DNA from: Podarcis melisellensis
Lineage: Eukaryota
DNA: 64,000 nucleotides
Direction: 5' to 3' (one strand)
Assembly (NCBI GenBank): GCA_964234715.1
Contig: OZ174280.1
Below, one piece after another: positions 13,101 to 16,100 of the stretch; positions within the stretch are counted from its first letter, which is position 1, and every line of letters begins with the position of its first letter. The notes under the pieces were generated by a model that saw nothing but the letters and a program-made list of their open reading frames with translations, had not been told where the DNA came from and did not search any database. The position numbers and the translations under genes were made by a program.

Positions 13101-16100
13101 CAGTATTTGGGGGGACACGGTGCAAAACTGAGCTGATGTAGCCCTGCCTGTGTCTTGAGCTCTGAAAAATAATACAGCATTCATCATGTGGGTGGCATGA
13201 AAGGCTCATTATAGTTTGAAAATGTTGTCTGACAATTCATCCAGATAATTTATTAATAGCTATCCTGTTGATGTTGTGAATTTTTAATAATGTTGTTTTC
13301 ATCAGTCTCATATGCAAATCAGGTTCTCAGTTGAGTTCAGTCTTATAAACACAGATTTCTCTCTCTCTCCTGTTAACTGTTCAATGATTTAAAATGTCAT
13401 TGTAAAGCAGTTGTTGAGGCATGATTGACTAAGCAAATTAGTCAGTAGGGTGTAGGATTTCTTTTTTAAAAAATCTCTCTTGGTTAAGCTTGTACTACAG
13501 AATTTCTAGAAATAGATTTTCTCTAGGGTTGGAAATCTTAACACCCTCACCATTAATTAAATTGGTGAAGCTTTGTTTTCCAAAGCCTCTGTTACAAGCA
13601 TAGAACTTAAAAGCACTTTACAGAAATAACAGCAATTTGTGGGCACCTACATCTTTTTGTTGGCTTCAGCAGATAATTAAAGGACATTGCCAATTCCATC
13701 TTTTCAGTTTAAAAATTGGAATTCTGAAATACCCTGCGATTTAAAGAGTCTGTCAGTGACCGTTGTCATTCTAATATACAATTTGCTTGTACCTATAGGT
13801 GTACAGCAGTATGGAACGTCTTTCCATCCATGAAGAGAGGAAAACGCCGCCGCCTACCAAGCGTAGCCTGAGTGAGGAAAAAGATGACAGACTAGAAAGC
13901 CTTGGCCTGAAGTGTCGAGACCGCAGCTGGGTGATTGGGTCTCCTGAAATGTGAGCGTAACAAATGCTAGGTGTCCTTTACTTTTTCTCCCTGCCTCTGG
14001 ATTAAAATAACGTTTGTGGGGGCAAAGAAGCAGTGTATGAACAGATAAACTTCATAATATGCTAATATTCCATGAAGCATTTCCAGACTTTTATCACAAC
14101 AAATATAACGCAACGAGTTTTACTGTTAAGCAAAAAAGTATTTTGTGAGGGGTCTTAATCAACACAGTGCTCCCCAGATGTGAGCCATAGCTCGTCTTAT
14201 CTCTGACTGTGGTGGCTCAGGCTAATGGAAATTGTACTCCATAGCATCTGAATGACAGACACCATGCTGGCTACCTTTTATCTGAAAAGGGTGCTCACAT
14301 GAACATCCAAATAAAGTACCAGTGTAGAGGTTTTTACAGTCATGTATTTAAAGAAACGTATTGGTACTTTTGATTATGCTGAATACCAATGTTCCCTTCT
14401 AATACACGTCTAAATATTGGACTTGGTAGCTTAATATTTCAAGCTGCAATTCTGTATACAGTGGTGCCTCGCAAGACGAAATTAATTCGTTCCGCAAGTC
14501 TCTTCGTCTTGCGGTTTTTTCGTCTTGCGATGCACGGTTTCCCATAGGAATGCATTGAAAATCAATTAATGCGTTCCTAGGGAAACCGCCTTCAGACCAG
14601 GTCCGGGGACAGTCTGTCCCCCGACCTCTTCTGAAGGCTGGGGGGGGGGGGACAAGGGCTTTTCTTCCCACTGCCAGCCTTCAGAAGGCTGTTCTGAAGG
14701 CTGGCGGTGGGAAGAAAAGCCCTTCTTCCCACCTCCCGCCCCGCAAGCTCCGGGGACAGGAGGGCTTTGCTGCCGACCGCCAGCATTTTAAAAGCCCCTG
14801 CTGTCCCGGGGCGATTTTAAAATGCTGGCGGGCGGGAGCGAAGTCTCCGCTGCCCCGAGGAGATTTTAAAATGCTGGGGGTCGGCAGCGAACGCTTCGCT
14901 CCCGCCCGCCAGCATTTTAAGATCGCCCGGGGCAGCGGAGAAGTCTCCGCTGTCCCGGGAAGGCAGGCGGGGGGAGCAAAGACTTTTGCCCCCGCCTGCC
15001 TTCAGAAGAGGTCCAGGACCTCGTTCCGATGCCCGGCGGCAGGGTGCGAGGTTCCCGCCCCACCGCCCGGCATCGGGGCATCGTTCCGATGCCGGGCGGC
15101 GGGGGGAGAGGTTCCCGCCCCACCGCCCGGCATCGGGGCATCGTTCCGATGCCCGGCGGCGGGGGGAGAGGTTCCCGCCCCACCGCCCGGCATCGGGGCA
15201 TCGTTCCGATGCCGGGCGGCGGGGGGAGAGGTTCCCGCCCCACCGCCCGGCATCGGGGCATCGTTCCGATGCCCGGCGGCGGGGTGCGAGGTTCCCGCCC
15301 CCCCGCCCCGCTTCGGAGCAGCGTTCCGAAGCGGGGCGGCTGGGGCAGGTGTTCCCGCCCCCCCGCCCCGCTTCGGAGCACCGGGAGAAGCGATCTCCCC
15401 GCAGCCCCTTGCTTCAAAAGAGGTCCGGGGGCAGCGGGGAAGAAGCGCTGCGCTTCCCGCTGCCCCCGGACCTCTTTTGAAGCAAGGGGCTGCGGGGAGA
15501 TCGCTTTTCCCCGCAAACCCTTGCTTCAAAAGAGGTCCGGGGGCAGCGCGAAGCGCTTCCCGCTGTCCCCGGACCTCTTTTGAAGCAAGGGGCGGTGGGG
15601 AGAAGCGATCTCCCCGCAGCCCCTTGCTTCAAAAGAGGTCCGGGGGCAGCGGGGAAGAAGCGCTGCGCTTCCCGCTGCCCCCGGACCTCTTTTGAAGCAA
15701 GGGGCTGCGGGGAGATCGCTTTTCCCCGCAAACCCTTGCTTCAAAAGAGGTCCGGGGGCAGCGCGAAGCGCTTCCCGCTGTCCCCGGACCTCTTTTGAAG
15801 CAAGGGGCGGTGGGGAGAAGCGATCTCCCCGCAGCCCCTTGCTTCAAAAGAGGTCCGGGGGCAGCGGGAAGCGCTTCCCGCTGTCCCCGGACCTGGGGCT
15901 GCGGGGAGAAGATCGCTTCTCCCCGCCGCCCCTTGCTTCAAAAGAGAAGACCCGCTGTCCCCTGGGCAAGCTTCGTTTTGCGAAGCAAGCCCATAGGGAA
16001 ATTCGTCTTGCGAGGCAACTCGAAAACGAAAAAACCTTTCGTTTTGCGAGTTTTTCGTCTCGCGAGGCGTTCGTCTTGCGGGGTACCACTGTATTCTGCT

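Follow-up and report, generated by a model that had tools for sequence, protein, structure and literature searches.

Tandem-repeat-carrying MITEs are an established kind of transposable element, some of which have palindromes at the repeat junctions (PMC3879986). In DTC84 of Donax trunculus and in pearl-type elements, a non-coding sequence with short terminal inverted repeats (TIRs) holds a central array of core repeats in an end cassette; the length of the array varies between copies of DTC84, and the junction palindromes have been proposed as hotspots where array length changes (PMC3879986). Among vertebrates, a satellite-carrying MITE of the Tc1/mariner kind is known in Xenopus: miDNA4 of Xenopus tropicalis, whose array is able to expand, according to the summary in the review PMC9659126. 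Tigger elements make TA duplications and have TIRs of about 20 bp, the range for pogo/Tigger being 8-33 bp (PMC9219625), and non-autonomous families with Tigger-like ends occur in Anolis (PMC3014272). In the foldback-type elements Tetris (PMC4079207) and Galileo (PMC4168063), the long TIRs are themselves repeat arrays, the whole element folds back, and satellites can be seeded by such elements.

The current work concerns a transposon of 1633 bp in Podarcis melisellensis, located at 14459-16091 of a 64-kb stretch of contig OZ174280.1 (the window, which contains a single run of N, at 47084-47251, and none near the element). We consider it likely that this is a non-autonomous cut-and-paste transposon that inserts at TA, a member of the Tc1/mariner/pogo group whose ends resemble those of Tigger and whose interior is a passenger of GC-rich palindromic DNA, and that it lies in an intron of MAST2. 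What is described below of anatomy, statistics, module relatedness and host-gene context was observed on this single copy. The ends and the insertion site are composed as follows (fold z values here and below are against dinucleotide shuffles).

14457-14458, no strand: TA target-site duplication, left flank, by direct sequence reading
14459-14588, + strand: left end cassette, with the TIR, three subterminal motifs and an imperfect palindrome
14459-14480, + strand: left TIR, 22 bp, compared with the reverse complement of 16070-16091
14470 (- strand), 14503 (+ strand), 14519 (+ strand): subterminal 11-bp motif of the left cassette, by motif scan
15958-16091, + strand: right end cassette, fold z -6.6
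15972, 16002, 16038, 16054, 16070, all on the same strand: subterminal 11-bp motif of the right cassette
16070-16091, - strand: right TIR, 22 bp, compared with the left TIR at 14459-14480
16092-16093, no strand: right copy of the TA target-site duplication, by direct sequence reading

An earlier, sequence-only reading had described a TA duplication and TIRs of about 22 bp, and both are present: TA flanks the element on either side, and the two 22-bp TIRs agree in 20 of their 22 positions. Only two sites in the 64-kb window fit the TIR pattern, where none is expected, and these two are the ends of the element; no further copies of the element were found in the window. Metagenome, prokaryote-genome and viral contigs scanned for exact matches to the TIR, and metagenome contigs scanned for the core motif of the interior, gave none, as expected of collections that contain no lizard genome. 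The 11-bp subterminal motif occurs eight times in the element against an expectation of 0.15. The left cassette folds into two hairpins, 14466-14533 and 14535-14588 (z -11.1), the second of which encloses the imperfect palindrome of about 18 bp. In the right cassette, the final three subterminal motifs are 16-bp tandem units that continue into the TIR. The ends are asymmetric, in that a 31-bp subterminal stretch is shared between left and right as a direct and not an inverted repeat; therefore, the copy studied here may have been rearranged.

The same reading had called the element non-coding, and the longest frames agree with this. The 378-aa open frame has no Pfam match, and no relatives of two interior or end ORFs were found in two word searches of a protein collection. 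The long open frames of the element are a consequence of its GC-richness.

The assignment to pogo/Tigger, which had also been proposed, is tentative. A TA duplication and TIRs of 22 bp fall within the values tabulated for pogo/Tigger (TA; 8-33 bp; PMC9219625), but both are common to Tc1/mariner and are not diagnostic. The window contains no autonomous element encoding a pogo-type DDxD transposase with CENP-B-like DNA-binding domains. Tigger/pogo elements and their non-autonomous derivatives, including the Anolis families with Tigger-like ends, share with the lizard element the TA duplication, TIRs of about 20 bp and ends starting with CAG; the lizard element differs in having no transposase gene, and its interior is not a deletion derivative of such a gene (PMC9219625, PMC3014272). 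Full-text searching found no literature linking the label TcMar-Tigger with Podarcis, and a full-text search for the letters of the TIR returned only unrelated primer coincidences. Beyond the target-site duplication and the length of the TIRs, we infer the superfamily from a likeness to Tigger ends. Presumably, Tigger1 and the lizard element also agree in their tandem subterminal repeats and in the offset of a short C-rich hexamer.

The element had been called a MITE as well. At 1633 bp it is too long for the word "miniature", which refers to a few hundred base pairs, and "non-autonomous element with MITE-like ends" is the better term. It belongs nevertheless to the established kind of tandem-repeat-containing MITE-like elements: its end cassettes, of about 130 bp, enclose a 60-bp repeat in 6 copies and a 215-bp repeat in 2.3 copies. 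Like DTC84 and the pearl-type elements, it is non-coding, with short TIRs, a central repeat array and palindromes at the repeat junctions. DTC84, however, has a putative AA duplication, is much shorter and is not GC-rich, whereas the lizard element has a TA duplication, two different arrays in addition to several single hairpin modules, a nearly wholly palindromic interior and a vertebrate CpG island (PMC3879986). miDNA4, a Tc1/mariner MITE with a satellite motif, and Xmix/Xstir are likewise vertebrate non-autonomous elements with a tandem repeat inside, a likeness by description, as summarised in the review PMC9659126. Tetris and Galileo resemble the lizard element in their tandem subrepeats and strong potential for secondary structure, but the lizard TIRs measure only 22 bp (PMC4079207, PMC4168063). 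A foldback element was considered and rejected: beyond 22 bp the ends no longer match in inverted orientation, every inverted repeat is local, and neither half of the element is an inverted copy of the other.

The location in an intron of MAST2 claimed earlier is supported by MAST domains on the + strand on either side of the element. When exons were searched singly, DUF1908 and kinase exons were found upstream and PDZ exons downstream, the latter with the PDB entry of MAST2, 2kqf, as their best match. These matches support a MAST kinase gene on the + strand as the host, with MAST2 as the best candidate and the element as intronic. The bounding exons were placed as stop-free frames, and their splice sites are approximate.

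13799-13951, + strand: likely upstream MAST2 exon, a stop-free open frame aligned with other MAST exons; no Pfam match for this frame
17157-17546, + strand: likely downstream MAST2 exon, a stop-free open frame; no Pfam match for this frame

About 1.4 kb of GC- and CpG-rich DNA in an AT-rich intron had been reported, and base composition confirms it. Within 14651-16050 (1400 bp), the GC fraction is 0.67 and the observed/expected CpG ratio 0.87, with 137 CpGs; in the 5-kb flanks, the corresponding values are 0.39-0.40 and 0.30. The element carries 156 of the 711 CpGs of the window. With thresholds of at least 500 bp, GC of at least 0.55 and a CpG ratio of at least 0.65, the interior at 14651-16050 is a CpG island by the formal, sequence-based definition. 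The insertion, or at minimum the last duplication, seems recent, given the abundance of CpG and the absence of errors among the 215-bp copies described below; alternatively, both features could reflect a lack of methylation or ongoing homogenisation. CpG decay at stem mismatches gave no clear signal as a clock, the sites being few: 6 of 24 G-T pairs in stems stand in a TpG context, and mismatches and G-T pairs are not dominated by CpG decay.

Between the two cassettes, the interior is built of the following modules.

14589-14637, no strand: hairpin H0, 20 pairs, z -4.5
14642-14737, no strand: hairpin H1, 43 pairs with a 5-nt loop, z -11.7
14765-14941, no strand: module b, a pair of hairpins, 14765-14843 adjoining 14844-14941, z -12.2
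14959-15003, no strand: hairpin HE, 19 pairs
15021-15380, no strand: 60-bp minisatellite of six units (TRF: period 60, 6.0 copies, 92% matches)
15383-15894, no strand: palindromic array; nine arms, each about 50 nt, in alternating orientation; DNA fold z -41
15895-15957, no strand: tail hairpins, related to the 215-bp unit

H0 is an inverted pair of a core motif of about 23 nt, which alignment to the 215-bp unit shows to be a building block of the 215-bp array as well. H1 follows a run of 12 G and contains a 33-bp stem with one G-T pair (14672/14706). Module b has four copies of a 17-nt A/T-centred motif between 14777 and 14922, in the orientations +, -, -, +, and a further copy of the core motif follows HE at 15000-15020. 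Every unit of the 60-bp array, about 4.5 of type I and 1.5 of type II, contains two complementary 14-nt arms. The palindromic array has basic periods of 103 and 112 bp and a higher-order unit of 215 bp, which is repeated 2.26 times at 15383-15868 with 0 mismatches in 271 compared bases, and it includes perfect 51-bp Watson-Crick stems at 15388-15438/15456-15506 and 15603-15653/15671-15721. The similarity of the tail to the 215-bp unit has a z of 23.9.

The interior had been described as a chain of hairpins of at least four different kinds. Folding supports the chain: as a single strand, 84% of the bases of the element are paired, in 19 hairpins placed end to end that span 1511 of its 1633 nt, and all modules exceed their shuffles (z -4.5 to -41), whereas control folds gave z -0.7 and -1.4 for the flanks and -2.7 for another GC-rich stretch. 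RNA folds gave z -35 and -17.6. In the minimum-energy fold with the 19 hairpins, the left TIR pairs with the right TIR. The 33-bp stem, the 17-nt motif pairs, the 14-bp stems of the 60-bp array and the 51-bp stems are all present, and hairpins at 14535-14588, 14589-14637, 14959-15003 and 15895-15932 are added to them. The word "different", however, applies less well, for the types are mostly related: sub-motifs, including the core of about 23 bp, are common to H0, H1, module b, HE, the 215-bp unit and the tail, and the 60-bp unit is the sole module outside this sharing.

Such stems might have a role as RNA, either within the pre-mRNA of MAST2 or in a transcript of the element itself, as long dsRNA, miRNA/siRNA precursor or ADAR substrate, or the CpG island might be a promoter or regulatory element. 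The perfect 51-bp stems, the RNA fold of the 215-bp array (-520.9 kcal/mol, z -35), the sub-threshold likeness to many miRNA-precursor models and the formal CpG-island values would agree with this. We nevertheless judge it improbable: no Rfam family was matched at its gathering score (the best, mir-763, reached 62.4 bits against 100), the 100 sub-threshold Rfam matches fall on both strands and among unrelated models, as they do for any long hairpin, and the palindromes are symmetric at the level of DNA. These generic sub-threshold hairpin matches were rejected as evidence for an RNA gene.

Arrays that are palindromic and rich in GC present difficulties for both sequencing and assembly. Given the 2.26 identical copies of the 215-bp unit, it might be supposed that the transposon is real and that the assembly has miscounted the 215-bp and 60-bp repeats or made some inverted junctions wrongly. 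A partial artefact of this kind seems quite unlikely when set against the clean ends with their target-site duplication, the orderly higher-order structure of the arrays, in which distinct variants follow a fixed order, and the distance to the only N run (47084-47251).

Under the preferred reading, a passenger interior between transposon ends, movement would probably depend on nothing but the two end cassettes, each of some 130 bp, in which the 11-bp subterminal repeats would be putative transposase-binding sites. The 1.37-kb interior would be passenger DNA, presumably without function, made of GC-rich quasi-palindromic modules most of which may descend from the core of about 23 nt; two of the modules would have been amplified to tandem arrays, one of 60 bp x 6 and one in which periods of 103/112 bp make up a 215-bp unit present 2.3 times. 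Three generic DNA-level processes would be at work on the hairpins. First, an inverted duplication or a template switch would make or repair a palindrome, and replication slippage or unequal exchange would then amplify it in tandem; either process could also occur in gap repair following excision. For the intron, the by-product would be a formal CpG island together with long potential dsRNA or cruciform stems.

The modules themselves record a nested history. The nine arms of about 50 nt have diverged (pairwise differences of 0-14 in 63 positions), one pair, arms 1 and 2, is nearly identical as a 56-nt inverted pair with 98% complementarity, and the 215-bp unit was later copied 2.3 times without differences. 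Growth by repeated inversion and duplication, as proposed earlier, is matched by nested inverted and tandem rounds, but few inversion events are required: once a single palindromic unit is repeated in tandem, the array is complementary to itself at each offset. Probably, the passenger interior grew through palindrome formation, slippage and template switching. Template switching has been reported to give paired arm changes without selection, and this quasi-palindrome mutagenesis accounts both for perfect stems arising de novo and for multi-base "compensatory" changes in one event (PMC8794818, PMC5453318). The 60-bp units of type II match this pattern, and so does the 215-bp unit with its near-identical pair of arms. 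It is a mutational mechanism and not an element family, and we infer its action here from the pattern alone.

The paired arm changes could instead reflect selection for stems. Efficiency of transposition drops with element length in Tc1/mariner, and extrusion of cruciforms or hairpins might compact the interior and draw the ends together, or recruit host factors, so that an element of 1.6-2.2 kb would move like a short MITE. A minimum-energy fold that pairs the TIRs and packs 84% of the bases in 19 hairpins speaks for such selected hairpins, as do the linked arm changes of the 60-bp units, in which two arm positions distinguish type II from type I and vary in concert. This covariation, however, comes from a single variant lineage and involves two pairs, and its score is reached by 28 of 500 and 85 of 500 shuffles. 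Moreover, the Tc1/mariner/pogo mechanism requires the ends only, and perfect recent duplications resemble mutational expansion. Template switching would suffice without selection (PMC8794818), and selection for the hairpins appears very unlikely to us.

Pack-TIR-like capture of a host CpG-island promoter or gene fragment, to which the CpG-island composition alone would point, was set aside as very unlikely: the whole interior resolves to internal repeats and palindromes, there is no Pfam domain, protein relative or other protein-level signal, and nothing similar exists elsewhere in the 64-kb window.

A wider interpretation would make the GC-rich palindromic interiors of lacertid lizards an adaptive or self-reinforcing design, in which template switching during gap repair adds hairpins with each cycle, compaction keeps the ends close so that some 2 kb remain mobile, and unmethylated CpG islands and palindromic minisatellites are scattered through genes; we regard this as a long shot. 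The element is real, probably young and eye-catching, but in essence an ordinary transposon that carries repeats. To our knowledge, no large satellite outside the element is derived from it.

As a single copy, the element is mainly a point of annotation: in this MAST2 intron, a mobile element, rather than a regulatory or RNA gene of the host, should be given as the source of the CpG island and of the "compensatory" stems. Perfect stems that arise through template switching without selection would call for caution in claims of RNA structure based on covariation. The finding would also bear on the birth of satellites from transposons, on possible intronic sources of dsRNA and on replication-fragile sites. 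If the family is as described here, it would provide a clean vertebrate case of a transposon that makes palindromic minisatellites and CpG-island-like DNA and disperses them into introns.

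The element, 1633 bp at positions 14459-16091, is a real DNA transposon of the non-autonomous type, and its CpG-rich interior is palindromic and built from repeats. This confirms what the sequence-only reading observed and supports its interpretation in part. It carries the target-site duplication (TSD) and terminal inverted repeat (TIR) signature of the Tc1/mariner/pogo group, together with repeated subterminal motifs. The TIRs are 22 bp long and agree at 20 of the 22 positions; a search for the terminal pattern that tolerated as many as 3 mismatches finds only the element's two ends in the 64-kb window, where chance would give none. 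All 8 copies of an 11-bp subterminal motif (0.15 expected) lie in the two end cassettes, each about 130 bp long. At the right end the motif appears as three 16-bp tandem units leading into the TIR, and at the left end it appears once within the TIR and twice in the opposite orientation. A 31-bp stretch common to both ends (14503-14533 and 16038-16068) contains two copies of the motif and is a direct rather than an inverted repeat. Thus, the ends are asymmetric, and the left end may have been rearranged. The ends of Tigger1 presumably share the CAG start, an equally placed C-rich hexamer and the tandem subterminal repeats. Tigger elements duplicate a TA target and end in TIRs of some 20 bp (PMC9219625), and non-autonomous families with Tigger-like ends have been reported from Anolis (PMC3014272).

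Parts of a MAST kinase are encoded in several plus-strand open frames of the window, and the element is placed among them as follows:

0.9-9.6 kb, plus strand: open frames with DUF1908 and protein-kinase pieces
13799-13951 and 17157-17546, plus strand: open frames within which the likely flanking exons of the host intron lie
14457-14458 and 16092-16093: TA TSD copies, flanking the element on both sides
20.2-21.9 kb, plus strand: PDZ pieces; best solved-structure matches to MAST2 (2kqf), with MAST1, MAST3 and MAST4 scoring lower
24463-26589, plus strand: terminal open frame of 709 codons, Ser/Pro-rich

Lying between two likely exons, the element is intronic, and it accounts for about half the length of an intron that, as bounded by the open frames of these exons, measures roughly 3.2 kb. 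The 709-codon frame probably represents the large final coding exon of MAST2, which would place the window past about 26.6 kb downstream of the coding region. Two interspersed repeats are present as inverted pairs: 16638-16845 / 43709-43916 (208 bp, 91% identical), the first copy being 550 bp beyond the element's right end, and 11742-11916 / 56189-56365 (177 bp, 88% identical), whose open-frame translations seem to resemble the BovB/SINE-type repeat that is common in squamates and ruminants. Two further stretches of about 160 bp, at 37530-37683 and 58536-58696, are self-complementary (arms 78-80% alike); together with a related fragment at 27344-27431, they resemble small elements of foldback or MITE-like type from a different family. 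A run of 168 N at 47084-47251 is a masked stretch or an assembly gap.

The whole element has a GC content of 0.65 and a CpG o/e of 0.90; its 5-kb flanks have values of 0.39-0.40 and 0.30. It holds 156 of the 711 CpGs in the window, and a formal CpG island covers 1400 bp of it (14651-16050; GC 0.67, o/e 0.87). The only other island, at 63651-63950 (GC 0.61, o/e 0.81), is at the extreme end of the window and may be the promoter region of an adjacent gene.

Because the interior is GC-rich, both of its strands contain open frames in several reading frames, with a maximum length of 378 codons. The longest has no match in Pfam, and a word-based protein search detected no relatives for two frames of the element. 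A known RNA gene was also rejected: none of 100 Rfam matches was near its gathering score (best 62 bits against 100), and these sub-threshold matches, which fall on both strands and involve unrelated models of miRNA precursors and other hairpins, are what any long hairpin yields.

Under DNA energy parameters, the fold of the entire element has an energy of -771 kcal/mol, and 84% of the bases pair. The left TIR pairs with the right TIR, and between them lie 19 consecutive hairpins that together span 1511 of 1633 nt. Every module folds beyond its own dinucleotide shuffles (z -4.5 to -41), against z of -0.7 and -1.4 for the flanks and -2.7 for an unrelated GC-rich stretch. As RNA, the 215-bp array (15383-15894) gives -520.9 kcal/mol (z -35) and the region 14589-15020 gives -320.9 kcal/mol (z -17.6). 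The four hairpin types described in the sequence-only reading all lie where it placed them: the 33-bp stem, which contains a single G-T pair and is part of a 43-pair hairpin; four copies of an A/T-centred motif, in orientations +,-,-,+; the 14-nt arms, in 6 units of the 60-bp array (15021-15380); and the 51-bp stems of the 215-bp array, which are perfect (15388-15438/15456-15506 and 15603-15653/15671-15721). CpG decay does not dominate the mismatches in stems.

That reading also took these hairpins to be different from one another. The transposon signature and the nested duplications stand; the hairpin types are not independent. Sub-motifs are common to hairpins H0 (14589-14637), H1 (14642-14737) and HE (14959-15003), module b (14765-14941), the 215-bp unit and the tail (15895-15957), and their local alignments reach z of 4-24 relative to shuffles; only the 60-bp unit is apart. 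One of these sub-motifs, a core of about 23 nt, is present 9 times in the 215-bp array, its orientation alternating from copy to copy, and diverged versions of it occur in H0 and after HE. In the 215-bp array, nine arms of about 50 nt follow one another in alternately inverted orientation, which makes it a tandem array of a 103/112-bp palindromic unit. Its arms differ from each other at 0-14 of 63 positions, and arms 1 and 2 pair as inverted copies over 56 nt, with 98% complementarity. The four-arm 215-bp unit is present 2.26 times with no mismatch over the 271 bases compared. The interior is a record of nested inverted and tandem duplications.

The 60-bp array comprises about 4.5 type I and 1.5 type II units, which differ at two positions per 14-nt arm by complementary changes. 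Within 15261-15380, the boundary between types falls inside unit 5, where the within-unit stem is broken at two positions; all stems between adjacent units are intact, so that every arm pair is preserved in the inter-unit register. This covariation represents one variant lineage and two pairs, and since the observed level was reached in 85 of 500 and in 28 of 500 shuffles, the signal is not strong and is only suggestive.

During transposition, a transposase would recognise the end cassettes, with the hairpin interior as passenger DNA. A palindrome, once arisen, may have been amplified through slippage or unequal exchange; few inversion events would be needed, since palindromic units repeated in tandem are automatically self-complementary at every offset. 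Template switching, during replication or during break or gap repair after excision, could make perfect stems and convert both arms together, and so produce "compensatory" changes without selection (PMC8794818, PMC5453318); bioRxiv 10.1101/2023.08.09.552703 deals with template switching in break repair. The absence of errors between the 215-bp copies, together with the high CpG content, suggests that the last duplication was recent and that the element is young or unmethylated.

Tandem-repeat-carrying MITEs are an established kind. The clam element DTC84 has core repeats and junction palindromes in an end "cassette" (PMC3879986), and a Tc1/mariner MITE with a satellite motif is known from Xenopus, as are Xmix/Xstir (as summarised in PMC9659126). 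The foldback elements Tetris and Galileo have satellites built from their long TIRs (PMC4079207, PMC4168063); the foldback test separates the present element from these. Although visually striking, the element does not represent a new kind of system; it belongs among the known tandem-repeat-carrying MITE-like elements.
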